This document shows positions 6,557 to 63,225 of a DNA stretch of 64,000 bases, piece by piece. The stretch comes from Lepidodermella squamata (taxonomy: Eukaryota > Animalia > Gastrotricha): contig JBLDXI010000048.1 in NCBI GenBank assembly GCA_047495785.1, positions 682,001 to 746,000 of the forward strand. The letters are read 5' to 3'. Made by a program: the position numbers and the translations under genes. Position 1 is the stretch's first letter. Every line of letters begins with the position of its first letter. The notes under the pieces are model-generated. The model saw nothing but the letters and a program-made list of their open reading frames with translations, was not told the DNA's origin and did no database searches.

Positions 6557-7123
6557 ATGAACCATTTTATAGTTTCCAACCAAGCTAAATCGGCTTACTC
6601 GTCATTACAAGGTGATGTACTCGACGCAAGTAGTTTTGCAGTTTCAATTTGCATCGAAGCCTGCCAAAAGCAGAAATGCGTATGCAGCATGCACAACCGC
6701 GCAATTCCAGGATCTCTTTGTCAATTGCGATGCATGAGAAACGCGATGGCAATCACGCTACTGATTTGTGGTTGTCTATTTTCATTGCTGTTTCTACTCA
6801 TACTTACCTACGAATTCCATAATTTTGCTACTGTTTCGCAGCAGGAAAATGAACTCAGCCGGAACGCTACGGATAGTAAATCTGAATTCAAGGGTCTATG
6901 GCGGAGAGCCGATGTTTTCTTGACAATGATAGCAGCCCTGATGCTATTTGGCGCCATTTCCATCGTCGGCAAGGCGATATTCAAAGGAATGCAGATTCGA
7001 ATAGATGCTATCGAAAAAGAACTGGAAAAAGTTACTGAATCTCTATTCAAAGCATCCGAAAAGAGCAAGGTCCAGGCAGATGAAAGTGGACACATTTTGT
7101 TAAACACAGCAAATAACAATTGA
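6557..7123 (+). CDS. Orphan two-transmembrane protein with C-terminal coiled-coil-like tail
   Basis: 188-aa ORF; hydrophobic segments AITLLICGCLFSLLFLLILTY and VFLTMIAALMLFGAISIVG flank a loop with an NAT sequon; tail IRIDAIEKELEKVTESL; AATAAA near 7224. True start may be an internal Met. Confidence 0.55.
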   Translation: MNHFIVSNQAKSAYSSLQGDVLDASSFAVSICIEACQKQKCVCSMHNRAIPGSLCQLRCMRNAMAITLLICGCLFSLLFLLILTYEFHNFATVSQQENELSRNATDSKSEFKGLWRRADVFLTMIAALMLFGAISIVGKAIFKGMQIRIDAIEKELEKVTESLFKASEKSKVQADESGHILLNTANNN

Positions 7124-7260
7124 TAATTTCTGATCATTTGAATTCAATGGGAAACTCATCTGTGATATTCATAATATTGTATATTTTTTGTTTAGTTTAC
7201 TTTGATGTGGCTAAAATATAATCAATAAATCAATTTTTTGAAAACTTGTGTTTTCGCAGT

Positions 7261-8190
7261 TTAACTGAGGTCGTGCGAAACCTGAAGCTTGTCGTACATC
7301 TCTTGCAGAACTCTAAAAAAGAACTGCATTGCTGTTCAGGAGTGATGAACAATGGGAACGAACTTAGCTAAATCGCCATGCCCACTTGTAAGCATCGCGT
7401 CCAAAAAGTGTCGCCACTTGGAACAATCTTTCGCAACGTAGCCGACTAGCAGTAATTTCACTTTCTCCGAGTCGAGTCTCTGCAAATAAGCCGAAAGTAG
7501 AGTTGACAATAAAAATTTAACTTTAAACCTCTTTCGAAATCTCTCGTAAATCTTCAAGAGTGACAACCCTTGCCAAGTGCGTACTGAGCTTTGAATAATC
7601 AATCAAGGGAACGAGATGTTCCAGTGAATCTGTGATGACCTTCTCTACGATCTTTCTTTCTCTGCTCAGGTCTCCAAAAGGATTCATCGCATTAACTTCT
7701 GATCTTTGCGGGCTGTTGACTATTTCCTGGCGTACAGCAATGAAGTCAAATTCGATCCCACCGCAGATCTCATATTGCTGTTTTAGCATCCTTCCGATGG
7801 AATTATTTTATTTTGGACGACGTGACCTAATGTGTTGTGTACAACTGTACCTGGCCAGTTCAGCGTCGTAGATTTCAAGAGCAGTGTTGAGTCTTTGCCA
7901 GGCCTGGACACTTCTACCAACGTAGCAGTCGAAAAGCTCGTCGATTTTAAGCGCATCTGTGGGCTGTTTGAGCAAAATTTTCAGCCTTATAATATCAAAT
8001 TGCATTTGTGTAATACTTTGGCATCTATCGTTTTCATTTCTTGTTGAGATACGACATCATTCGCCAGAAGAGTTGTTCGGAAAAACTGAAATTTGATTGA
8101 ATTCTGAAAAAGCTCTCGCACTTTATTCAAAGCTCTTTGAATGATTTCGAGCTGCTTCACTGAGACATCAGGATCAAGGTCAGATCGCAT
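7261..8190 (-). CDS. Tandem CARD-only protein (238 aa, 5 exons)
   Basis: Exons 8190-8017, 7963-7851, 7790-7529, 7479-7364, 7312-7261 are joined by GT-AG introns of 53, 60, 49 and 51 nt into one 717-nt open frame. Two alignable helical repeats (VVSQQEMKTIDAKPTDALKIDELFDCYVGRSVQAWQRLNTAL / VVTLEDLREISKERLDSEKVKLLLVGYVAKDCSKWRHFLDAM) fit CARD helix 3-6 patterns. Confidence 0.7.
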
Positions 8191-8476
8191 CGCTTAAAAA
8201 TTGATGAACTCAGTTGAGGCCCAGGACGCTAACTGTCAGATTTTAGCAACACAAAATAGCAAATTAGCACCGTTTGTGATAATGATAAGAGCATGTTATC
8301 TACATGTGTTATCTATAAGACTTGCCACGAAACAACGATGACGCATAATAGACCCTGATACTTGCCCACATGAATTCATTTATTGACGGAATTCAAGTCA
8401 ATAGAAAACTGGCTTAAAATGAAGCAGCACATTGAAAAAATAGGAAAAGTCACAGGCACATAGACTTAGTAACTTT

Positions 8477-9146
8477 TCAGTTATCCTTATCGATATAAGC
8501 AAAAATCTGATGCTGATCAGCGTAACGGCAAAGGCTGCACTTCGGCCCTGATACGTTGAGGGGGCACCGCTCAGCATGACCCGAAACTCGTAATTCATTC
8601 AACAAATCCTGAACACCGGCATCATTCTGAGGAAGCGACTGCAGAAGTCGAACAGTTTCATCCGCCAGTTGAACAGCCAAGCTTTCATCACCGATCAAAG
8701 CCGCGGTCTCGATAACGCATAGAATGGTCACATTCCGTCGAGATAGGATCCATTCACGGCAGAAGGTGTCTAAAGCTTGGCTTGCCGTTGGCTGGCTACA
8801 GACATATTGGAAAAAGCTGTTGTCGAACGCTCTTTGGAACATTGGCTGCAAACTAGCCGCCTGCATTTTGCTGCAGAGTCTCTCAGCATTGAACGATCGC
8901 TGTCGGCATTTTTCCACCACTGGCTCGAAAGTCGGAAGGACCATGTCTCGTTTAAAAATCTATCATCAAAAAGAAGCAATTAGCTGTTATCTTCGAGTAC
9001 CCAGTTTCAACCCAAGAGATATAATGATACAAACAGGGGATATTGGGCCTTATTTCTCAGGAATGAACTTTTTATCGCTCACTCACTGTTGCTAAATTTT
9101 GCTTATCAGCAGTGCGCAGGCTGTTTGCGTAGGTTTTTGCTGGCAT
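8477..9146 (-). CDS. Orphan 180-aa protein with possible death domain (2 exons)
   Basis: Exon 1 9146-9087 (MPAKTYANSLRTADKQNLAT, donor gtgagt), exon 2 8959-8477 in frame. QPTASQALDTFCREWILSRRNVTILCVIETAALIGDESLAVQL resembles death-domain helices 4-6. Gene model is better supported than the domain call. Confidence 0.5.
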
Positions 9147-10059
9147 CAACGCTTCCGGTTGTTATCTTGATATCCGTGCGTTCGCGTGCAATTTGCTGCC
9201 AGCAATACTTTAGTCCCTGCTTTGGCTTGCCTTCTGTTTTGGCGCAACTAATAAGACCACGTATTATCTCAATACTAATTTGCTATTTAAACGTATAATA
9301 TAATCTGTCGACGCCATCAAAATCTGAATAGCCTCTCCTTTATACAGGATAAATGAGGGGGAGAGTTTCGTTTTTGATAAAACAAAACAAGGCTTTTATT
9401 TATGTTTTTGTTTATAAATATAACGGCTGAGTTGAGGAAAACTGCCGAGGCACGTTTCATCAGCCTTGTTTAAGACTGATTGAAGAGTGGACATCGTCTC
9501 ATTCATGGAAGAATTCGTTGGTGTAAACGGCGTGAAAAGACTTCATTATTATTCAAAATGACCGTCTGTAGTCGGCAAATTACCTGCCCTGAGAGTGATT
9601 ATAATAATAAAGTGTGAGCACCACCTTGCAGTGCGATCTTAGTTCAGGTAAATTACTACGCTGAATGCTAATGGTCAAAAGGCGTTAGCGATAGAGTTTT
9701 TTGTAGCATGAATCTGCGAGGCCTGAAAACTGTTCAGATGAAACTCCTTATCACAAAAAAGCTTTCAGTTGAATTGAAGCAGCCCAAGTGCTCGAACAAG
9801 AAAACGTTGTAACGGACTGGTTGACCCCATATCCCTAGATAAATAATCCTAATGGCCCATGCACGCTTGTATTTGAGTTAGCTAAAGAAACAATTGGCAA
9901 ATAAAATTCACATTCAATAGGATTTCTTGACCTGTACAAGAGTGTCACCAGTCTTCAGCTTCCTATGAAGATTCATAGCAGTTGAAAAATGTACAGAATT
10001 TCTGAAAATGTATTTCTTGTCCTTTATTTCAGCAAGAAATATGACAAAAACAAAAGGTA

Positions 10060-10449
10060 TTAATAAGAATTCGATTGTTCCAAGGCTGGGATTCGGCTCT
10101 TCAACGCTTTTTTCGCTCTCCGAACGTTAATGTAACTGACACATATGACGATGGTGATGACAATGTTAGCGGCGCTCGCTATGATTACGACCCAATTCAG
10201 GGCCATATAAGTATTCGATCGTCGCCTTGGTTTAATTGCGTGATCGAGAACTATGTCCCTTAATTCTTCGACGGTTGTATTTGCCGATTGTGCTTTGATC
10301 TCAGCTGGGATATATCGATTCGGTTCATCGATGCAAGCCATCGCGATGAAACAAGCTGGCCATACCAGCATCAGGACGAGATTGACGGCGATCAATAGCC
10401 TGCTAGCCTTTTCGGGTAGAATGAATTGGGAGCAAACAGGAGAACCCAT
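10060..10449 (-). CDS. Orphan two-transmembrane protein
   Basis: 129-aa ORF; hydrophobic segments LLIAVNLVLMLVWPACFIAMA and MALNWVVIIASAANIVITIVICVSYI, loop with NTT sequon, basic tail; AATAAA about 30 nt after the stop. Confidence 0.55.
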   Translation of the reverse strand: MGSPVCSQFILPEKASRLLIAVNLVLMLVWPACFIAMACIDEPNRYIPAEIKAQSANTTVEELRDIVLDHAIKPRRRSNTYMALNWVVIIASAANIVITIVICVSYINVRRAKKALKSRIPALEQSNSY

Positions 10450-17768: not shown

Positions 17769-18857
17769 CAATAAACCTACGATAAATAATAAAATAAAAC
17801 GAAACTCTATTATGCGAGCTCAAGTCCTAGGTTATCAGTAACAAGAAACAGACAGTAACAGAAAAAAAACAGGAGAAACAGATTCTAGGAAAGATGGAAG
17901 ATAGAGGGAGACCTCTGAGAGCGATGCCCTCTTAGAGCTTAGAGGGCACTTCAACCAATAACCAATGAAATTGGCGGAGGCTATCCGTGGACATTGACAT
18001 TAAGGTAGGAAGGCAAGAGAGAGTGAGGTGTCAGCTCCTTCAAAGGATGGTTCAGCCTGGGGATTAGGGTGCGACTTTTTGCCCAAGCGGAAAAACGGCC
18101 GAGACAAATGCGCGAAAATTTGAATTTATAAAAATTAAAAACTTTGAAAATTCATTTGAACGTAAAGTTTTACATTAATTGTCGATTTGTTATTTTTAAT
18201 ATATTAGCAAGGACAAATGAAAGCAGCGCTTTGCAGAGAAAATCGATCAAATCGAAAATCGAACTTCAAATACTTACTTGAGTAAACTTGAAGAAACTTG
18301 AGCACCTGGTCGGACAGGTTGCATTAGGTACTAATATTGAGAGGACATTTTGCTCTGTCCATAAACAGATCTTTGTCCCGTGGAACGCTTCCTTCCAAAG
18401 TTTTGCAAACAAGTTTTACACGGCTCCTCACCGCTAAGCTCGCCTCACTCGGTGCGTACCGAAGTTTCACCTTTTTCCATGGTGCTTGTTCTTACGTAAA
18501 ACGCAGGTGACTAGCTGCGCGCTAGCCTTGCTACCGCGAGCTTTCCCTCTTCATGGCGAACTTATCCTTTGCGGCTTCCAAACGCTTACCAAGTAACAAG
18601 TCAGTTCATTGCGTTGGCAACTGTTAGCTGTCGCCAACGAGTTTGCTGATTCCTCGTTATAAGAGTACTAGCCGCTCGTGCCTTCTTTAACGCGTCTATC
18701 TTGTTAAATACCGCGTATATGTCATCTGAGACAATAAACTTATTTTTGCTCTACATGTGCTAGTGATACCTTTTGCAACCTTCTCCCTTCTTCTGCTTAA
18801 CTATGACTGAATTTGATTTATACTTGTTTTACTTTTGTTCATAGGGGGTCTGCCAAA

Positions 18858-21800
18858 ATGAGCGAAGATAGTTTAAATCTACAACTTCTATACTTCGATG
18901 CGTCCTTATTTCCTGATATCATTCAGAGTCGGGCGATCGTCGTCAAGGCTGGAATGTGCGCTGAAGACGTCCTGCGGAGATGCGCTGAGGAATTACATTT
19001 ATCAGCTCATTCGTTTCCATTTTTCGGTCTACTGGTGAAACCCAAGCCATCTGCCGTTTCAATGGAAACTTATTGGCTCACCCCCAACACGAATTTCAAT
19101 ATCTTATTGAAGCTGTCAGCAACGCATGATTTCTACTTTCGGTTTAGATTCAAGCCTGCTCGTGGTCTCATGCGTTTTGCTCAAAATCGATGCAAAGTTT
19201 TGGGTAAACATTACGGATTTCGTGCCCTGTTGCAACAAAGCATTGTTATGTCTGATAATTTATGGATGCTACTTCTCGGACAATGCGAAAACGACTTGAA
19301 TGAAGAAACGTACAGTATATTGAAGATGAAAGATTCAGCTAGAGGAGATCGGGAAGTTCGCGGCGACTTGTGGGCTCTCCGTGTTATGAGTAGGTCCAAT
19401 TCAACTAGGATTTGTCTGAAATGGGATATCAACAGTATTGCTGGTTGCTTGCCGGAAAAGCTGCGAAATAAAAAGGACTTTCTTCGAGATGTTAAAGAGT
19501 GTCTCGCCGATGCAACGCGCAAATTCAGCGCACTGTCTCTGCACGACATTTACATCACTTTTCTTGAAGAATATGTCTACGAAAATGCTACCAGGCTCAT
19601 ACAGCGCTTTAATGTTGAATATGAAGACTTCGGCGAAGGTGTGACTTACATCGACACTCAGGAATGTAATTGCTACCCGGCTGTCCGATTTGCGGGCCGG
19701 AATACTTCTCAAATCAGGGAGATTTGCACTCTGAAAGACCTGAATGGTTTTTCAATTTCCGATAATATTGTTAAGCTTCATTTAAAACGACTAGGCGACA
19801 TTTGTTCTCTGAAATTCACCACCAAGAACCAGGCTGAATCTTTTGCGTCTGAAGTGGATGCTCAGTACCGAACGTGTGTGGATTGGTACGGAAATTTGTG
19901 TCTGAATTTACCTCAGTCGGTCTACTCGCCTCGAATTGCGAGCTTAAAACTGAATTTCGTCATGCCATCGGCTAGTTTAAGCAACAACTCGCCTGGAATT
20001 CGCATCACTGACAACGTTCCATCTTCCCTCTTCAAATTTCGCCCATTTATTTTGCAACAGAGCAGCCAGAAAGTCGGAAATGTCAAGGTTGAATTTTCGA
20101 ACGCGGTTAAAAACTACGGTGAATTCTACTGGCAACTTCGCATTATATTGAACGCGGACGGCGCATGGCAAATTCGTGAAAATTCTGGCTCGATCGATTT
20201 CGAGGATAATCGGGATTTACTACAAGATTTTTTGTCCTTGCAAGACGCATGTCAAGCTTTGTTGACTAATATCGCTAATAGACTGGGAGGTCTATCAGGA
20301 AGATGGCTGCCGACATCTATTGACGAGAAGGAAATAATGGTACGATTGGGTCACATTGGCCGTTCACCGCGCATTCATTTCATCGATCCTGAATTGATTG
20401 AGGTGAGCGAAATTCCGCGATTTTTCGCCAAATATTAAGGCCAGCGCGTTTTATATGATGCCATAAGGAATAAAACGGCCAAGAGGTCACGATTCATATC
20501 ATAACCGGTCATATCACCTTGCGCACAGGGCTAATTATCGAAATATTACGCCATCACTCACTCATTGTCGCGCGCGGTTTATTGCACCCTATTATATGTA
20601 TTGCACCAGCGCCGGGTCTGCCTGCTTATTGATGATGCCTATCTAACCCGGTATGACCCTTAATATTTGAAATCTAATATCGTTAGTTAACATTTTCCGG
20701 CAAACATTTAGTCATCTAATTATGCAATTTTCAAATACGTAAATGACCAAATATTAGCTATTTTTTCTTATTTCCCTTCAAGAATTTTTAACCGATTTTT
20801 GCTTTGTTTTAGGCTATAAAAGCCGATGGTAACAACTTACCTGTTCTCGCCTTTTCGGAGCAAGTAATTCGCATGGAAAACGTGGCAGACGGCGAATTTT
20901 CCCGCCTAGTTTTTGCCGCATGGGCCAACACCGGAAACCAGTATCTACTCCGAGAATACAACGGAACTCGTAACCATCTGCTATCCCGATTTTGGTCAGC
21001 CGCTGAAAAATGGGCGCAATTATCTTATTCCGGATTGGCTCAAATCGCCGCATTTTCGCCTGGAGCTGATTTTTACCTGCTCGAATTTGCGAGTGGCGGG
21101 CCGCTTGACGTTTATCTTAATTCTTGCAATTCAGCAATCTACCCGACTCATTTGCTTCTGACTATGAAGACCCTGTGCGATAGTCTTGTCTACTTCAAAG
21201 AGCGGAATTACACTCATGGCGATATTCGCCTGGCCAATGTTGTTTTGCTGAATCATACCATGGAACCGCCGATTTTATTCGAAGTGAAATTACTGCCGCC
21301 CGAGATAGATCAACGCGCCTTACCATCCGGCGCGGAACAACCGTTTTTTCTTCGCGATCGCGAAATTTTTTGGCCGCAAAATGGACCTAAAACCGACATT
21401 TACGCCCTCGGTGTTACTTTCATCCAGCTATTGAGGCTCGGTAGTGTTCCGACCCAGCAAGATTTGGCTGGTTTTCTCGACTCGCCCGAGCCTAATTTAG
21501 CGAATTTTCTCGATCGATTCGCTGAATTTCAGCCTGAATTTATCAAATTATTTCAGCGAATTTTTGATTTGATAAAAACTATGCTAGTCAAAGTTGATGG
21601 GGACATCGATTTTGTGCGCGATATTTCGCGAAAAATAGACGAATTGGTAAATTATTGCCGAAATCTGCCACTGGTCGCCCTGAATAGCGCTTCCACCGAG
21701 TCTTCATCTATCGAGACTGAAATAAATCGCTACTACCACATTCCGTTTGAAAATATCGAGCCTGGTCCGAGGCTCAGTCACGGCCATTTCGGCGAGGTCA

Positions 21801-24777
21801 TTCGAGCGAGTTGGCGCCAGCAAAATACGGCTGGAGATGTGAAAATTTCCACTGTTGCGTTGAAACGATTGTTGCACGATCGACCTGATGATTTCCAACC
21901 GGCTTTCAGTCGATTGAATTCTGAGTTCATGATTTGGGTCAATTTGAAACACGAAAACAGTAAGTTTAACACTATGCCTGACTTTACTCTCAGTTGCATT
22001 TTTTCTTGCTCCGAAAATGAACGCGCGTAATATTAATCATTTTTTCCTAGAAAATGTGGGTAAACCTTGGGAAACATAATATCTTTTAGCAGAACTAAAT
22101 TAGGTGATGTTAGATTAGCCAAATGTCACTTTTCCAATGGGTTTATTTATCACTTGCGCTCAAATGTGTTATCACTTGCATATTTTTCTGGTAAAATGAC
22201 GCCAATCATCATTTTCGCAGCCAATAATTAAAAAATGTTATCAGGTATCAAATTTGTTTGATTCGGAACAATGGGTGCTATTGCTACGTACACAAGCCTA
22301 ACTCGAACGGTTCGGGTGTCGAAATTGATTTCAATAGTTTTACTATTATAAACATCACATGCCTACGGAGGACGAAAAATAAAACTGATTCATTTGGTCA
22401 TACTATTATAAATTATCCTCCTTTCTGCTATCGCTAATTAAAGTACATTTTATCGATAACCAAAAGCGTTATCGCGATCGTCTCAGAGCAATATCAACTT
22501 TCCGACGAAATCCCGTCAACTGCTCTTAGTTCTTACGAAATTCACTACGAAGGTTCAAGGTTCAACTAAGGCCAGGAAGCAGCTCTGCTTCCATGGGGAC
22601 CATTTTCATCTCTGAACACAAAATTAAAAATCCCCACTAAGAAAATCAATTTCAGTGCGCGCATTGAGCCCATTAAAAGTTTATATCGATGAGGACGGCT
22701 CGCTTGAAATCCGAGGCTGCAAAATCAGACTAAATACTCACGGCCCTTCTACCCGCGCTCTTGCAGCCGATTTGTGGTAACCCTGCCCCAAGTCGCAAGT
22801 CATCTGGTTGACAATTTAATTTAATAAAATGCGATAAAATTTTTGTAATTATCAGCTACGAAAATGATGCTTGGGGTAATTTTACTAGAAAAATACGGAA
22901 GTGAGGGTATTTCTCTCTAATATTTCTACGAAAATAAGACTATAAATTCTATAGTGAAGAACGCGTCTTATACAGAGTTTTAAGCTGAAATTAAAGATGA
23001 TTTATTACGAATTTCGCTGATCAAGCATGACTTCCCTGGAAGTCTCGAAAAGTGGTTTAGGCCCATCGAAAATTTCAAAATTTGGTCCCCTACCCTACAG
23101 TCAAATTTGGTTCCGCTAAAAGACGCTTTAGGAAAAGCGGCTTATCTTTTGCACCTGAATCTTTTGAACTGATCAACGCGAAAAAATTCAGTGCCTTGTT
23201 TTTCTAATACATACTAGTCATGGTATGATATTATCTTTGATTTGTTTATAGTTATTCGAGTTTACGGCATGACCTATTTCGACGGCCGACCCGGTATCGT
23301 GATGGAGTTCATCGAAAACGCCCTGACTCTGGAAAAATATTCAAAGGGCAAATCTCATCGTGATTCTGCGTTTTTTCGCGAAATGACCGGTTTATTAATT
23401 CAGGTTGGCTTCTTTTAAGAATATTTGGTTCGTCATCATTGTGAATTATAATGAATTTTAATTGAACATTTTTCGGAAAGTATGTGGAAATCGAATTCTC
23501 AATTAAGTTTAGGAACACCGGCACCTACTATTTTTTCAATAGTGAACTAAAGACCAACATTTGAAATGGCTCGAGTAAAATAATAATTAATTTTTGATAT
23601 CAACATTTTGCTTTTTTTATTCTGCGTCCCATGGCACTGGACTGGTATTTTTATTCAAGCTCTGTGATTTTCTACACCAACCAGAAATTTTATAAATTTG
23701 CGAAATTTATCAAATAATTGATTTCTAATAATTTGTTTACGGGGTAATCCAATTCATATTTTTTTTTCTCTTGAAAAATCAGCTCATAATTTTGTCCCAT
23801 TGAAATTTGAAAATTCAGTAATAACTGTCCTGTGTTCAATGGCACCTTGAATCCCTGCGCCCAGTCAAAACTCGAGTGTAATCGTATAGTAGTCAGCGAA
23901 AGAGAATGATCATTTTTTTTCTGGCATCAATTCACCTGTTAAATTTCATATACGTGGTTGTTTTAAGTGCTACAAATATCCGAGTCTGGCGTTCCCATAG
24001 TTCCATAAATGTTTGCCTTGCCACCCCAGGCCGATCTCCTAGAGCTTTCTGATATAGCTTGAAAATTCGATTCAAGTTGTACCACGACACCAAAAAGCTT
24101 GGTTGTAACGCTCCTGCATTTTTTCGATTTTTTCTTTTTGTGGCGTGTTCCCCGAAAATACCTAAAATTATTTAAGAATATTACATAGCTCGAGATCTTA
24201 CGACGAAAAATCTCGATTTCTGTTGCAAGTTTCGCAAGTGTCGGTTTTCTCATTTATCAGTCTCAAATAACTGAATTTTCTAATTTTTATTGAATTTTTA
24301 AAGGTCACGAAAGGAATGCAGCATTTATCGAATCGCAACATGCCAATTGTGCACTGCGATTTGGCCGCAAGAAACGTCCTCATCCAACAGCTGCCTCAAA
24401 ACAACGGCTCGCCTAATCTAGTCGCAAAAATCGGCGATTTTGGATTAGCTTGCTTGGTCGATACTTCTTCGACGTACCGCCGACTACCCGCTCAGCAGGA
24501 AATGCCGAGACCATGGTGCGCCCCGGAGGTGCTGGGCGAGTGCCGCGCGACCCCAGCGTCTGATGTTTTCAGTTTCGGCGTGCTAACTCTGGAGGTTATC
24601 TGTCAAAAGTCGCCGAAAAAACCGCCTGTTTTTGACGACCCGCGAACGCATCTATTCGAGAGAGATACCCCGTCTAAATTGCGAGAAATTATGTTGAAAT
24701 GCTGGCAATTTCGCCCCGAAGAACGGCCGAATTTCCAGATGTTGGAAGTGTTTTTGAACGCGTTTTATCAGGGCTGA
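18858..24777 (+). CDS. JAK: Janus-kinase-like tyrosine kinase, copy A (FERM, SH2-like, pseudokinase, kinase); non-RD
   Basis: Exons 18858-20402, 20813-21959, 23252-23403, 24304-24777. FERM motifs AEDVLRRCAEEL..FFGL..YWLTPN..FRFRF and AESFASEVDAQYR; pseudokinase HGDIRLANV; kinase GHFGEV, VALK, HCDLAARN, DFG, WCAPE, SDVFSFG, CW..PEERPNF. Confidence 0.88.
22172..22904. mobile_element. MITE-like element with about 70-bp imperfect TIRs in JAK-A intron 2
   Basis: tcacttgcatatttttctggtaaaatgacgccaatcatcattttcg... pairs with ...cgaaaatgatgcttggggtaattttactagaaaaatacggaagtga; absent from the 269-nt equivalent intron of copy B. Confidence 0.7.
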
Positions 24778-25101
24778 ATATTTTTTTACATGTCTTTCTA
24801 TTTATTCTATCTGTTGCTTCTTGCTGTCATTTTTATGTGCTGTGCCAAGACATTACTGCTCACACTGAAACTGGTCATTCCGCCACACTGTTGTGCTAAA
24901 AAATATTTTAATTGCGACGAAAACTTTGTTCAAACGATTTTATTATTGGCTATTAAAATATTTTGTTGTCGTTCAAATGACTGGCTTTGTTCAATTTTAC
25001 TAATTTTTCTGTTATCTTTTTAGAGTAATTTGAAGATGAGCTGAGAGAAGTCAATCCTTTTGGGTGTTTCGAATAGAATGTCGACAGCTTTTTCTTTTTT
25101 C

Positions 25102-28944: not shown

Positions 28945-31900
28945 ATGAGCGAAGACACTCTAAATCTGCAAATTTTATACTTCGACGCGTCATCATTTCC
29001 TGATATCATTCAGAGTCAGCCAATCGTCGTCAAGGCTGGAATGTGCGCTGAAGACGTCCTGCGAAGTTGCGCCGAGGAATTGCATGTATCGGCTTATTCG
29101 TTTCCATTTTTTGGTCTGCAGGTGAAACCCAAGCTATCTGAGGCTTCGACGGAAACGTATTGGCTCACTCCCAACTCGAATTTCAATGTATTAATGCAGC
29201 TGTCAGCAACGCATGATTTCTACTTTCGGTTTAGATTCAAGCCTGCTCGTGGTCTCATGCGTTTTGCCCAAAATCGATGCAAAGTTTTGGGTAAACATTA
29301 CGGATTTCGAGCCCTTTTGCAACAAAGCAATGACATGTCCGATAACTTGTGGATGTTACTTCTCGGACAATGCGAAAACGACTTGAGTGAAGAAACGTAC
29401 AGCATATTGAAGATGAAGGATTCAGCTAGAGGAGATGAGGAAGTTCGCGGAGGTTTGTGGGCTCTCCGTGTTATGAGCAGATCCAGCTCAACTAAGAAGC
29501 GACTACATTTGAGTACTGATTTTGTCCTTGGTTGGTTGCCAGAAAAACTGCGCAAAAAAATCGGCTACCTCCGCAGTTCCAACCCCTCTATAATGTGTGT
29601 GAAATGGGACTTCAACAGTATCGCCGGTTGCTTGCCGGAAAAGCTACGAAATAAAAAGGACTTCCTTCGAGATGTCAAAGAGTGCCTCGCCGACGCGACG
29701 CGCAAATTCAGTGGACTGTCTCTGCGCGCCATTAACTTCACTTTTCTGGAAGAATATGTCTACGAAAATGCCACCAGGCTCATACAGCGCTTTAATGTTG
29801 AATATGAAGACTTCGGCGAAGGTGTGACTTACATTGACACTCAGGAGTGTAATTGCTACCCGGCTGTCCGATTCGCTGGCCGGAATACCTCTCAAATCAG
29901 GGAGATCTGCACTCTGAAAGACCTGAATGGCTTTTCAATTTCCGAGAATGTTGTTAAGCTTCATTTAAAACGACTAGGCGACATTTGCTCTCTGAAATTT
30001 ACCACCAAGAATCAGGCTGAATCTTTTGCGTCTGAAGTGGATGCTCAGTACCGAACATGTGTGGATTGGTACGGCAATTTGTGTCTGGACACACCTCAGT
30101 CGGTCTACTCGCCCCGAATTGCCACCTTAAAACTGAATTTTGTCATGCCATCAGCTAGTTTGAGAATCAACTCGCCTGGAATTCGCATTACCGACAACGT
30201 TCCATCTTCTCTCTTCAAATTCCGCCCATTTATTTTGCAACAGAGCAGCCAGAAAGTCGGAAATGTCAAGGTTGAATTTTCGAACGCGGTTAAAAATTAC
30301 GGCGGATTCTATTGGCAACTTCGTATTATATTGAACGCGGACGGCGCATGGCAAATTCGAGGAAGTTCTGGCTCGATCAATTTCGAGGAAAACCGGGATT
30401 TATTACAAGATTTTTCGTCTCTGCAAGACGCTTGTCAAGCTTTGTTGACTAACATCGCTAAAAGACTGAATGGTCTATCAGGAAGATGGCTCCCCACATC
30501 TATTGATGAGAAGGAAATAATGGTTCGATTGGGTCACATTGGCCGTTCTCCTCGTGTTCATTTCATCGACCCAGAATTAATTGAGGTAAGCAAAATTTGG
30601 AGGAATATTTCAAACCTTCAGCAAACGTTAGAAAACATATTTTCCGTCAGCAACTGAAGCCCTATTATTTTTATTAAGATTGTAAGTGATTAGCGACCGC
30701 TAGAGCTGTTATAAGTGAGGAGCGCACACATAAGCAGCACAATCAAATTACTTGAGTTTAATCGACGCTTATTTACCTAAATTTGGGGGAAAGTCTTCCG
30801 TTTATGCGCCTCGGCGAACTCGCGCTAGCGTTTATTTATTTATTTTATTCATTTATTTTTATTTGACATGCAATTATCGCACTTGCGATTGTAGCAAACA
30901 GTAAAACAGAAAAAGAAAGATAATTTTTCACGTATTACGGCGCCTCACTGACGACACAAGATGTTTATCAATATCAATATTCATAAGAAATTTTTTAAAT
31001 GAATTGGGTTGGACTCCGAACCCACATAAATCGACGCAGCTTAGCAGCAAGGAGCTGCGCGCAAAATGTCGGACATTACGTCTCTGGTCTGAAATCAAAG
31101 CTGGGCGATGGCGTGTTGATGTTATCCGCGATACCAGGTGCTAGCTCAAAGCTCTCCTACAAAATAACGAAATAACAATCTGGTTACAGATTGAAAAATT
31201 ACGAAAACGAACATTAGAGTCCGACATTAGAAAGAGATTTTCGGCTGTGTCGAAGATGTACCTGGTTGATTTTAGCGAGGGCCAACAGTTCGAAGCTCCA
31301 CGACTGGTTCAATTGCAGCCGCAACTGCGGCATCCGAATAGATTTTCTTAGATCGCCCAGGCTTACGCTTTGTTGGGGTGGGGAGACAATCCATCAGTCG
31401 ATCGATGACGCCTGAGATGCCCTTGACGATCGACCAGTTTTTCCCGACTTGCCAGATGACGTTCGCGACTTGGCTTTCGTTTTGCGCGCTTTTCTTCCTG
31501 GAATAGGATTAATGCTGGCAACGATCCTGAAACCTCCAATGCAGGTCGTCGAGCTCGACTGTGAGTGCTGGACGGCCTGAGCCACTCTGCGAAACAGCTC
31601 GCCAGTCACTTGGTATCTCATCGATGCGAGGCAGGTGCTTGGTTATGGTGGAATGAATAAAGGGGCCTTTTTCGACCCAGGTTTACAAGTGCAGGCATGG
31701 AAGGTCACAACAGTCCTCTGTCATCTGGGCGCTACTTGCGCCGGGTTCGGATGACGGATGACATAATCTGGTCTTTAGAGGGCAATTTGTTATCCAAGAA
31801 TGAGCCAAATATTCCCATCTTGCTCCCCGGTGTACAACGTCGACAGATACTGTGACCTTGAGACTGTTATTGCTTATCTATGAGCCAACAAAATCGACAT

Positions 31901-34217
31901 TGATTTGGGGAAACTTCTATGATAGAATCAGGCTGAATGCTGTCTATACAGAGCAATTACAATACATCACTTTTATATCCTCCTTTATACTATTACTTAT
32001 ATAAGTTTTATGTTTTATTCATTTGTTTGTTTTGATTAAGGCTATCAATGCTGATGGTAACAACTTACCTGTTCTCGCCTTCTCGGAGCAAGTAATTCGC
32101 ATGGAAAATGTAGCAGACGGGCAATTCTCCCGCCTAATTTTTGCCGCATGGGCCAACACCGGAAACCAGTATCTACTCCGAGAATACAACGGAACTCGAG
32201 ACCATTTGCTCTCTCGATTTTTTTCAACCGCTGAAAAATGGGCGCAATTATCTTATTCTGGTCTAGCTCAAATCGCCGCATTCTCGACTGGAGCTGATTT
32301 TTACCTGCTCGAATTTGCGAGTGGCGGCCCGCTTGACGTTTATCTCAATTCTTGCAATTCAGCAATCTACCCGACTCATTTGCTTCTGACTATGAAGACG
32401 CTGTGCGACAGTCTTGTCTACTTTAAAGAGCGCAATTACACTCATGGCGATATTCGCCTGGCCAATGTTGTTTTGCTGAATCATACCATGGAACCGCCGA
32501 TTTTATTCGAAGTGAAATTACTGCCGCCCGAGATAGATCAACGCGCCTTACCATCCGGCGCGGAACAACCGTTTTTTCTTCGAGATCGCAAAATTTTTTG
32601 GCCGGAAAATGGGCCTATAACCGACGTGTACGCCCTCGGTGTTACTTTCATCCAGCTTTTGAGGCTTGGTAGTGTTCCGACTCAACAAGATGTGGCCGGT
32701 TTTCTCGATTTGGACGAGCCAAATTTAGCGAATTTTCTCGATCGATTCGCCGATTTTCTGCCTGAATTCAAAAAATTATTTCGCCGAATTTTTGGTTTGA
32801 TCAAAACTCTGTTGATCGAAGTTGATGGGGACGTAGAATTTGTGCGCTATATTTCAATGCAGCTTGGTGAAATGGTTAATAATTGCCGAAATCTGCCGCT
32901 AGTCACCCTGAATAGCTTTTCCTCTGAATATTCTTCGATCGAGACTGAAATAAATCGCTACTACCACATTCCGTTTGAAAATATCGAGCCTGGTCCAAAG
33001 CTGAGTCAGGGCAGTTTCGGCGAGGTCATTCGAGCGAGTTGGCGGCAGCGAAATGCGACTGGCCATGTGAATGTTACGGCCGTTGCGTTGAAACGACCGT
33101 TGATAGATCGACCTGATGATTCTCAGCCCGCGTTTAGCCGACTGAATTCCGAGTTTATGATTTGGGTCAATTTGAAACACGAAAACAGTAAGTAAATTAT
33201 TGTCATTTTTCATCTGGCCAAAATTGTTTTTTCTTTAACCATAATTTTGTCCTGGAAATGTACAATTTTGGACATGATATCGGAAATATCTTTGTCCATC
33301 TGACCAGGAATTCGACCCTTTCAATAACCCAGTTTTAATAGTCTTATTACTTTCGGCTTAAAGTTGGAATTATTCCTCCACAATATTGTCCGATTATCCT
33401 TAGGATGCTCCTTGGGGAATACCTCTCTTGATAATATCTTTTTTTTTCAATTGAAGTCATTCAAGTTTACGGCATGACGTATGAAGACGGGCGACCCGGT
33501 ATCGTGATGGAGTATATCGAAAACGCATTAACTCTGGAAACATATTCGAAGAGCAAATCTCATCGTGATTCTGCGTTTTTTCGCGAAATGACCGGTTTAT
33601 TAATTCAGGTTGGCTTCTTCTAAGATTATTGACTCATCATTAAATTCATTTTACTTCAAAAAATTTCGAATTATTGTTTCTGTTTGAATAATTATTTCCC
33701 AATTGTATTTTAAATCTTAATTTAATCGATTTTTAATTTTAAGGTCACGAAAGGAATGCAGCATTTATCGAATCGCAATATGCCTATTGTCCACCGCGAC
33801 TTGGCCGCTAGAAACGTCCTCATCCAACCGTTGCCATTAAACAACGGCTCGCCAAATCTAGTCGCCAAAATCGGCGATTTTGGATTAGCTTGCTTGGTCG
33901 ATACTTCTTCGACCTACCGCCGACTATACGATACGTTTTTTTCGCCGCCACCGTGGTGTGCTCCAGAGGTGGAACGCTCATGCCGCGCGACCCCAGCTTC
34001 TGACGTGTTCAGTTTCGGTACGGTAACTCTGGAGGTCATCTGCCAAGTAACTCCCGAAGAAAGGCCTGTTGTCACTAAACCGCACACGCATTTATTCGAG
34101 AGAGATACCCCGCCTAAATTGCGAGAAATAATGTTGAAATGCTGGCAAAAGCGACCGGAAGATCGGCCAAATTTTCAAATGCTGGAAGTGTTTTTGAACG
34201 TGTTTTATCAGGGCTGA
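28945..34217 (+). CDS. JAK: Janus-kinase-like tyrosine kinase, copy B; canonical HRD
   Basis: Exons 28945-30585, 32041-33187, 33457-33608, 33744-34217; same intron positions and phases as copy A; HRDLAARN, DFG, WCAPE intact. Confidence 0.9.
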
Positions 34218-61778: not shown

Positions 61779-63225
61779 TGTCGTATATAATGTGGATTTT
61801 TATCTAAAGTAGACATTAGATAGACCACACCTATCTAAAGTGGACATTACATATCTAAAGTAGACATTACATATCTAAAGTTAACTTTACATGGTTTATG
61901 TCATTTTTATTATTATTTAAAGTGGACATTACATATCTAATGTGTGTCATTTGTGTCATCTAATTCGTGGACAAGTTGACCTAATGGATTACCAATCAAT
62001 CAAGTTTGTTCAAAACAAAGCGGTCACTTACGCATGGGTTTTGGTTTATCAAGATCATTACGCGAAACTCTGCTTCATCCGCCCAATCGAGACCAAGCAA
62101 GCCAAGAACGTTGCCAGGGAGCTGATGTCGATATTCTGCATAATAGGAGCGCCAATGATTTTGCATTCTGATAACGGGAGGGAGTTCGTTAATGAGATTA
62201 TTCGCGAACTGGTGGAACTCTGGCCTGGTTTGATCATCGTGAATGGAAGAGCTCGCCATCCACAGTCTCAGGGTAGCGTTGAACGAGCAAACGAAGACAT
62301 CAAGCCCATGATCTCAGCCTGGATGTTGCAAGAATACACGACCTCATCGCAATCTCGAACACAAAACTCCGCAGGAGGTTATGTTTGCGTACCCGCCCAG
62401 GAACGGTTGTCCAGCTGAAATTCTGCCAGAAAAGCTGAAGAAGGCTGTCTGGAGCGAGGAAGATCTCTCTCCCTCCGATCTGCCTCCTTTGCTGGAAGAA
62501 GATGACGAAGTCGCAGTTCCAGTTGACAACGACGAAATCGAAAATCGGAGGAGCGAAGCTGATCATGCTGCTACAACTGGTCAACAGAAAAGTGCCGAAG
62601 AAATGCTAGCTCATGCAGCCAAGCTAGCGCCTATTGCCAAAGTCGGTGACACTGTATCATTGCTAGTTGACAAAGTCGATCGAGGCCCGGGTGACCTACC
62701 AAGTCTGGTCTGTGTAGTTCTTGAGCAATTCGAAGATGGTAGCGTCTCGCTAGGAACTCGCCAAGGACGGCTGGAAGGACATTACTTCTCCAACTGCTAT
62801 CGAATTAGCAGTGCGAGGGTCTTGACCCCTGAGGAGGTGCCTGACGTGGTCTTCAAATCGCTAAGAACAGCAAATGGTCAAGCCTCTTTGTTTGGGACCC
62901 AGGGACACCTCCATTGTAACTGCAAAGGGACGTGCACTGCTAGTGGAAGAGGCGCTAACTGCAAATGTCTAAAAGGCGAAGTTCGGTGCAACAGCCGTTG
63001 CCACCCTGGCTCTTCGAAATGTGAAAATCATGACTAAAAATTGATTTCGAACGAATAAATCATGTTTTCTGTTATTTCTGTTGTTTTTGAACACATTAGA
63101 TATGTAATGTCCACATTAGATAATAATAAGCTATGTAAAGTATACTTTAGATATGTAATGTCTACTTTAGATGGGAGCAGTTATCTAATGTCTACTTTAG
63201 ATAAAAATCCACATTATATACGACA
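61779..63225 (+). mobile_element. Ginger-type DNA transposon (rve integrase, KRBA2/SCAND3-like), internally deleted
   Basis: tatg|TGTCGTATATAATGTGG...CCACATTATATACGACA|tatg gives TGT-starting TIRs and a 4-bp TSD; about 20-bp subterminal repeats (tatctaaagtagacattaca); QVDL, HSDNGREF, HPQSQGSVER catalytic motifs; C-terminal CNC..C..CKC..CNSRCH; frameshift near 62340-62380. Confidence 0.9.

Follow-up and report, generated by a model that had tools for sequence, protein, structure and literature searches.

Tandem JAK-like genes of the gastrotrich Lepidodermella squamata: a probably ancestral non-RD catalytic loop beside an HRD paralog

Nearly all tyrosine kinases have the arginine of the His-Arg-Asp (HRD) motif, and this residue takes part in switching JAK kinases on. 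The plant kinases FLS2 and XA21 have Cys in this HxD motif. In human JAK2, the HRD arginine and the lysine at DFG+5 are Arg975 and Lys999 (PMC12208895). When either was replaced by Ala in JAK2-V617F (R975A, K999A), phosphorylation of Tyr1007/1008 and of STAT5 was lowered, pervanadate rescued the effect and factor-independent growth persisted (PMC12208895); since these mutants still signal, a kinase that has lost the clamp is not dead, although its phosphorylated loop is weakened or destabilised. The plant kinase EFR, which is non-RD (no Arg before the catalytic Asp) and has Cys at the RD site (C848), depends on phosphorylation of its activation loop and shows low activity as a catalyst (PMC8463890). 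In invertebrates, one JAK is the usual number (PMC3296744). A search of the full-text literature on non-RD kinases and JAK gave plant papers only, and no report of a natural non-RD JAK was found in it. Here, we describe two tandem JAK-like genes, JAK-A and JAK-B, in a 64,000-bp stretch (the window) of the genome of the gastrotrich Lepidodermella squamata (contig JBLDXI010000048.1, positions 682,001–746,000), in which a complete kinase core with Cys at the RD position lies next to a closely related copy with Arg.

In JAK-A, the catalytic loop IVHCDLAARN contains His-Cys-Asp (HCD; cac tgc gat, 24352–24360, + strand; Cys966, codon TGC at 24355–24357), whereas JAK-B has His-Arg-Asp (cac cgc gac, 33792–33800, + strand; Arg998, codon CGC at 33795–33797). 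Both motifs are in frame in the last exon, and that of JAK-A was also found in contigs of complementary DNA (cDNA). The letters agree exactly with those given in an earlier reading of the window made without database searches (the sequence-only reading), and its statement that Lys, Glu, the catalytic Asp and DFG are intact in both copies was confirmed as well: the beta3 Lys in VALK (21863–21865 in JAK-A), the alphaC Glu in NSEF (21923–21925 in JAK-A), the catalytic Asp and Asn, DFG and also APE are present in both. JAK-A, like the outgroup gene described below, is thus non-RD by definition, having a residue other than Arg before the catalytic Asp and retaining Lys, Glu, Asn, Asp, DFG and APE. 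The two proteins showed 88% identity, and among the 130 of 1105 aligned residues that differ a lone Cys/Arg difference is statistically unremarkable; the site carries weight because the Arg is near-invariant in tyrosine kinases and because the outgroup also has Cys. For these and all following comparisons, searches and folds were made exon by exon, and exons were joined only for alignments and substitution counts.

When 1.84 billion representative proteins were searched by phmmer with JAK-A exon 1, one match only was obtained (P0001; 42% identity over residues 4–515), which is encoded on metagenome contigs from ENA assemblies (loci L012, L013, and L014). By tblastn of the contig genes, the L013 contig was shown to be collinear with the window over 38 kb (window 12400–50600 compared to L013 2725–19093), the common gene order being four upstream minus-strand genes, the JAK-like gene, a zinc-knuckle/Tudor gene, OPA3, a small gene, a CN-hydrolase gene and an FHA gene. 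Where the window has JAK-A and JAK-B, this species has one JAK-like gene. On L013, it is modelled with exons at 6886–8739, 8792–9632, and 9697–10322, separated by GT..AG introns of 52 and 64 bp, and its product of 1106 aa showed 46% identity to JAK-A and 44% to JAK-B. Protein identity along the collinear 38 kb is only 33–84%, and the metagenome contig is much more compact than the window, with introns of 52–64 bp. Since JAK-A and JAK-B are 88% identical, with a synonymous divergence (dS) of 0.33, their duplication is far younger than the split from this species, and on these alignments the single-copy gene is taken as a proper outgroup to the pair. All three contigs, which come from two or more assemblies, encode the catalytic loop IVHCDLAARN, with cat tgt gat for His-Cys-Asp. 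The gene is constrained, with a ratio of nonsynonymous to synonymous differences (pN/pS) of 0.16 between L012 and L013. Word-index searches with JAK-A exon 4 and with the outgroup C-lobe returned the outgroup cluster only, followed by generic kinases of at most 38% identity, and two scans of JGI metagenomes gave nothing or generic kinases of at most 39%.

None of the three gene products has the phosphate pocket's second basic residue. In JAK-A, the segment DFGLAC (24436–24453, + strand; intact DFG at 24436–24444) has Cys998 (24451–24453) at the place of the second phosphate-pocket Lys in DFGLTK of JAKs, as seen in an HMMER alignment to JAK1 that is gap-free from DFG to the activation-loop Tyr. 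According to the same alignment and to the three-way alignment with JAK-B and the outgroup, Tyr1006 of JAK-A (24475–24477, + strand) corresponds to the leading Tyr in the YY pair of JAKs, and Arg stands at the second place. Thus, JAK-A combines HCD, T-Y-R and DFGLAC, JAK-B combines HRD, T-Y-R and DFGLAC, and the outgroup combines HCD, G-F-H and DFGLAC, with Phe at the position of the activation-loop Tyr (SSGFHRI). The hallmark set of JAKs, consisting of HRD, a YY loop and the DFGLTK Lys, is complete in none of them. As a control, HRD and DFGL[AST]R, with a basic residue at DFG+5, were found in each of the five tyrosine kinases of the genome that come next in similarity; since these nearest kinases keep both basic residues, the loss of the pocket is specific to the family formed by JAK-A, JAK-B and the outgroup gene. 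Further along the activation segment, the three-way alignment showed a rebuilt block in JAK-B, YDTFFSPPP (33927–33953, + strand), compared to PAQQEMPRP in JAK-A (24487–24513) and PVAQQMPYD in the outgroup. These nine codons differ almost wholly between JAK-A and JAK-B within identical flanks, and the change looks like a block replacement more than a series of point changes.

The direction of change was assessed from polarised sites, where JAK-A and JAK-B disagree and one of the two has the residue of the outgroup. Polarised amino-acid changes numbered 28 on the JAK-B branch and 12 on the JAK-A branch (binomial p 0.017). The excess was seen in both kinase-like domains, with 10 JAK-B changes vs. 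1 JAK-A change in JAK homology domain 2 (JH2, the pseudokinase) and 12 vs. 3 in the catalytic (JH1) domain (22 vs. 4 together), compared to 6 vs. 8 in the N-terminus. The Cys/Arg site is among the changes on the JAK-B branch. Between JAK-A and JAK-B, dS was 0.33 overall and 0.48 in exon 4, nonsynonymous divergence (dN) was 0.065, and the pairwise dN/dS was 0.20; nucleotide identity was lowest in exon 4, which contains the Cys/Arg site (82.6%). When dN was split by the polarised counts, a rough procedure, branch dN/dS came to ~0.12 for JAK-A and ~0.27 for JAK-B, and in JH1 to ~0.10 and ~0.41, respectively. The sequence-only reading had allowed for JAK-A evolving neutrally across its length. A neutral JAK-A alone would give a dN of ~0.17, more than the total of 0.065, and JAK-A is therefore not neutral; the pairwise ratio and the smaller number of changes on its branch speak to the same effect. 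On these counts, JAK-A appears as the conservative copy and not as a decaying one. Because the outgroup has Cys, because JAK-A is the slower copy and because one change is more parsimonious than two, Cys was very likely the state at the duplication, and the Arg of JAK-B would then be a reversion by a single T-to-C change (TGC to CGC).

The reading that we consider probable as a whole is that a non-RD JAK-like lineage is ancestral here, that JAK-A keeps HCD, that JAK-B regained Arg and that the kinase works independently of the clamp. In the ancestor of the lineage, the two basic residues by which ordinary JAKs and other RD kinases clamp the phosphorylated activation loop would already have been lost, and its kinase domain would most likely not depend on the canonical clamp between phosphotyrosine and Arg/Lys; the pseudokinase domain and dimerisation driven by receptors would control it instead. 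JAK-A would have retained this ancestral state under purifying selection. After the duplication, JAK-B would have acquired Arg through one T-to-C change together with a rebuilt C-terminal half of the activation segment in which a new Tyr was gained, and the outcome may be a partial re-coupling to loop phosphorylation or a specialisation of JAK-B as a partner of JAK-A. Several points weigh against this reading, besides those on family membership given below. Only one outgroup lineage is available, and Arg may have turned into Cys twice independently, by one C-to-T each time. Both JAK-A and JAK-B retain Tyr at the JAK phospho-site, and non-RD status alone is no proof of independence from loop phosphorylation, as the plant kinase EFR illustrates. 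Finally, the CGC codon of JAK-B is taken from the letters of the assembly, as the placement of reads covered JAK-A only.

The gene models show JAK-A and JAK-B as tandem paralogs on the + strand with the structure of spliced animal genes, each of four exons, with open frames and with GT..AG borders at every intron; the products are 1105 aa (JAK-A) and 1137 aa (JAK-B) in length. JAK-A exon 1 (18858–20402), an ATG-started open frame running to a GT donor, encodes the N-terminal 515 aa, FERM-like and with a region at the place of the SH2-like domain of JAKs. Exon 2 (20813–21959) encodes the JH2-like pseudokinase domain, a linker and the catalytic N-lobe with the glycine-rich loop (G-loop), as supported by Pfam and by a match to JAK1 JH2. 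Exon 3 (23252–23403; AG..GT borders, phase 1) encodes the end of the N-lobe, the hinge and alphaD/E of the catalytic domain, and exon 4 (24304–24777) the catalytic C-lobe to the stop codon (Pfam PK_Tyr_Ser-Thr, E 4e-32; cDNA contigs). The corresponding exons of JAK-B were modelled at 28945–30585, 32041–33187 (JH2-like domain and catalytic N-lobe), 33457–33608, and 33744–34217 (catalytic C-lobe to the stop codon), all on the + strand. According to the gene model and the alignment, exon 1 of JAK-B carries an insertion of 32 aa (~29497–29592), which is absent from JAK-A and from the outgroup and repeats the adjoining LPEKLR.K; on this pattern, it is read as a tandem duplication that arose within the FERM-like region. 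Introns 2 and 3 are 1292 and 900 bp long in JAK-A compared to 269 and 135 bp in JAK-B, and intron 2 of JAK-A contains a high-copy repeat at 22233–22431, where the summed contig depth in the DNA-type run described below was ~2220 compared to ~60 in the flanks. Synonymous divergence between the copies was 0.06–0.14 at JAK-A residues 601–720 (21100–21400 of the window, the JH2 C-lobe in exon 2) compared to 0.2–0.46 elsewhere, and JAK-A-type contigs from other samples carried clustered JAK-B-like letters at 21100, 21118, and 21355–21390. These are signs of possible ectopic gene conversion between JAK-A and JAK-B in the JH2 C-lobe.

Contigs from two sequencing runs were placed on the JAK-A region (18850–24800): a DNA-type run from 2024 (X1), in which 91% of sampled words matched, and a run from a separate study of 2015 (X2), which behaves as cDNA. 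The depth of X2 was confined to the four exons of JAK-A and was zero in the introns. Its joints were found at 20400/20811 and 23401/24302, each of which fits equally well 2 bases further on (20402/20813 for the first), and at 21959/23252; they coincide with all three introns, and splicing of JAK-A is thus confirmed. The X2 contig over 24309–24472 showed no differences from the assembly, and neither did the one over 24643–24800. Since 13 positions, including 24355 and 24360, separate JAK-A from JAK-B within 24309–24472, this contig represents a JAK-A transcript carrying TGC. X1 covers the Cys codon too, with no alternative letter there among the differences listed. A 27-mer equal to JAK-B 33927–33953 was found as the loose end of another X2 contig, and JAK-B is therefore transcribed as well. 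Another loose end in X2, of 21 bases at 18880, was considered as a spliced leader, and this was rejected. Its sequence is absent from the genome and matches the SMART template-switch oligo in reverse complement; it is therefore read as a cDNA adapter, in keeping with a cDNA library. At 18844–18857, 13 bases upstream of where JAK-A starts, there is an acceptor-like TAG, and no leader-bearing contig was seen at this start in the reads placed on 18850–24800.

The assignment of both genes to the JAK family follows mainly from their domain architecture. As in JAKs, a FERM-like N-terminus is followed by a pseudokinase domain, and a tyrosine kinase domain forms the C-terminal end. Exon 2 matched Pfam PK_Tyr_Ser-Thr (E 8e-13), and in a sequence search of PDB the top match of exons 2 and 4 was full-length JAK1 (7t6f), exon 2 of JAK-A aligning with JAK1 JH2 residues 628–743 (match extent up to 628–795) and exon 4 with JAK1 JH1 residues 987–1074; a JH2-JH1 structure of TYK2 was also near the top. 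The JH2-like domain is without DFG, KLLPPEI being aligned to KLSDPGI of JAK1, it has Arg at the position of the beta3 Lys (LLREY), and its G-loop is degenerate, so that the first kinase-like domain is, as judged from these residues, a pseudokinase. For the N-terminal 515 aa, matches to Pfam FERM_F1 were below threshold (E 0.07 for JAK-A and 0.011 for JAK-B; FERM_F1/FERM_N range 0.011–0.07). The ten best named matches of exon 1 by ESM features were all FERM domains, and so were the best 50 PDB matches by Foldseek (probability 0.77–1.0; JAK2 FERM-SH2 included), at template modelling (TM) scores of 0.11–0.20 and for a model with a predicted local distance difference test (pLDDT) value of 41. A profile built from JAK-A, JAK-B and the outgroup gave as its four best matches among 177,635 PDB sequences JAK2 (three entries) and TYK2 FERM-SH2. 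No further copies were found in the 121-Mb genome (151 contigs), and a search of the genome gave a single Pfam STAT_bind match above the cut-off (G000:C3:1021198-1021554, locus L011).

It is on the whole unlikely, although less so than the other alternatives, that the family is not truly JAK and was assembled independently from FERM, pseudokinase and tyrosine kinase domains, for example by derivation from a FAK-like FERM kinase, which would make the comparison with JAKs mere analogy. The top FERM matches by ESM and Foldseek were FAK/PYK2, which would fit such an origin. The JAK2 and TYK2 FERM-SH2 profile matches reached E values of 0.045–0.44 only, in two collinear segments, and AlphaFold modelled exon 1 poorly (pLDDT 33 from the single sequence, 41 with a five-row alignment), too poorly over residues 380–515 to show an SH2-like fold. 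No Pfam SH2 match was found even at E 10, nor any other domain in residues 101–515. The catalytic C-lobe was by score no nearer to JAK than to Eph, Met, Src-family, and FGFR kinases, so that the kinase profiles are not JAK-specific, and a genome search with the JAK-specific Pfam profiles FERM_F2 and Jak1_Phl (PF18377, PF17887), made with no positive control, came out blank. Membership at the sequence level thus appears weak. However, JAK and not FAK has this domain order and a C-terminus directly behind the kinase, the four best N-terminal profile matches were all JAK2 or TYK2, the JH2-like domain aligned best to JAK1 JH2, and the genome has a STAT gene and no other JAK candidate. Both genes are therefore referred to here as JAK-like, and on architecture they are very likely divergent members of the JAK family.

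The sequence-only reading had assumed the opposite direction, with an HRD ancestor kept in JAK-B and an Arg lost from JAK-A by a C-to-T change after the duplication; the outgroup would then have lost its Arg independently. HRD is found in all canonical JAKs and in the five nearest tyrosine kinases of the genome, and Arg is ancestral at some depth. Moreover, either Cys codon could arise by one transition at a CpG (CGC to TGC, CGT to TGT), and a CpG transition had been named as a possible origin of the Cys. However, the CpG observed/expected ratio was 1.26 in the window and 1.37 in the JAK-A coding sequence; since CpG is not depleted, no CpG hypermutability is expected here, and a CpG-hypermutation origin of the Cys was rejected. 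Two identical changes would be required instead of one. Besides, JAK-A is slow and JAK-B fast in the kinase domains (4 vs. 22 changes), and JAK-B is derived at neighbouring activation-segment sites where JAK-A matches the outgroup. DFG+5 is already Cys in all three genes, pointing to an old dismantling of the pocket. A loss of Arg in JAK-A is thus rather improbable, and the direction proposed earlier is most likely reversed, while the observation that prompted it was confirmed and its interpretation partly supported: a non-RD JAK-A beside an HRD paralog is real, expressed and selectively maintained.

A further possibility, which we regard as speculative and doubtful, is that the two cysteines of JAK-A (Cys966 in beta6 and Cys998 in beta9, a pair also present in the outgroup) replace the Arg/Lys clamp as a reversible disulfide or as a metal or redox switch tying the catalytic loop to the activation segment. 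This would make JAK-A a JAK gated by redox state and not by loop phosphorylation. JAK-B would then have reverted one half of the cysteine pair to Arg, and the two copies would form a natural non-RD/RD pair that works asymmetrically, like EFR and BAK1 in plants.

Still less probable is a decaying or attenuated JAK-A, that is, a weak kinase or near-pseudokinase acting as a mere scaffold or regulatory partner of JAK-B. Non-RD kinases generally have low activity in vitro (PMC8463890), autophosphorylation of JAK2 R975A is reduced (PMC12208895), and the G-loop of JAK-A (SHGHFG) has Ser at the first glycine. That Ser is common to JAK-B, however, and JAK-A has an intact frame, is spliced and expressed, retains all catalytic residues and is more conservative than JAK-B, with a branch dN/dS of ~0.12. 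The Cys is found, too, in the constrained gene of the outgroup, which as a single copy has to serve every role by itself. The sequence-only reading had allowed for a base-call error or a rare polymorphism. Faulty assembly or base calling and a rare, private polymorphism can practically be set aside as sources of the Cys/Arg difference: TGC was read in independent cDNA contigs (with identity over 24309–24472, which refutes the error), two samples carry it, and the same residue was found in the other species in three contigs.

Apart from the JAK-like genes, two open frames of retroelement type were observed towards the ends of the window: a reverse-transcriptase-like one on the left (1–1200) and, on the right (61921–62415), one that matches the core of an integrase (rve, E 5e-8).

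These comparisons describe a JAK-like lineage that is apparently without the RD Arg and its partner Lys and has been kept under purifying selection across species that are 46% identical in this protein. JAK-A and JAK-B, at 88% identity, form a natural matched pair for asking what part the RD clamp plays in the activation of JAKs, and if the preferred reading is true, a regulatory feature would have been lost and then partly re-evolved in a young duplicate. The locus also adds a JAK/STAT module to Gastrotricha, a phylum with almost no molecular data; the reach of the finding is limited by the obscurity of the organism and by evidence that is confined to sequences.

Compared to the canonical JAKs (Drosophila hopscotch and vertebrate JAK1, JAK2, JAK3, and TYK2), JAK-A, JAK-B and the outgroup gene showed the same domain order, with the kinase ending a protein of ~1100 aa. 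As in these JAKs, HxDLAARN, DFG and APE are found in the catalytic domain, DFG is missing from the JH2-like domain (KLLPPE compared to KLSDPG), and a STAT gene is present in the genome. Unlike them, JAK-A and the outgroup have HCD for HRD, all three have DFGLAC for DFGLTK, the activation loop has one Tyr or none in place of the YY pair, an insert of 8–10 residues precedes DFG, Asp is retained in the JH2-like domain (HGD, compared to HGN in JAKs), and by its sequence the N-terminal half can hardly be recognised, with no SH2 detected. As in the plant pair of EFR and its RD co-receptor BAK1, JAK-A has Cys for the RD Arg in a complete core and coexists with an RD kinase, JAK-B (PMC8463890; PMC11259431). 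EFR and BAK1 are, however, serine/threonine receptor kinases of an unrelated family, in which EFR acts allosterically on BAK1, and nothing links the gastrotrich genes to the pattern-recognition role of the plant kinases. The closest functional comparison is that with the engineered JAK2 mutants R975A and K999A, in which the same two positions have been made non-basic as in JAK-A; the JAK2 variants are laboratory Ala mutants in a V617F background, whereas the residues here are natural cysteines, conserved across species, in a kinase whose activation loop would have co-evolved with them.

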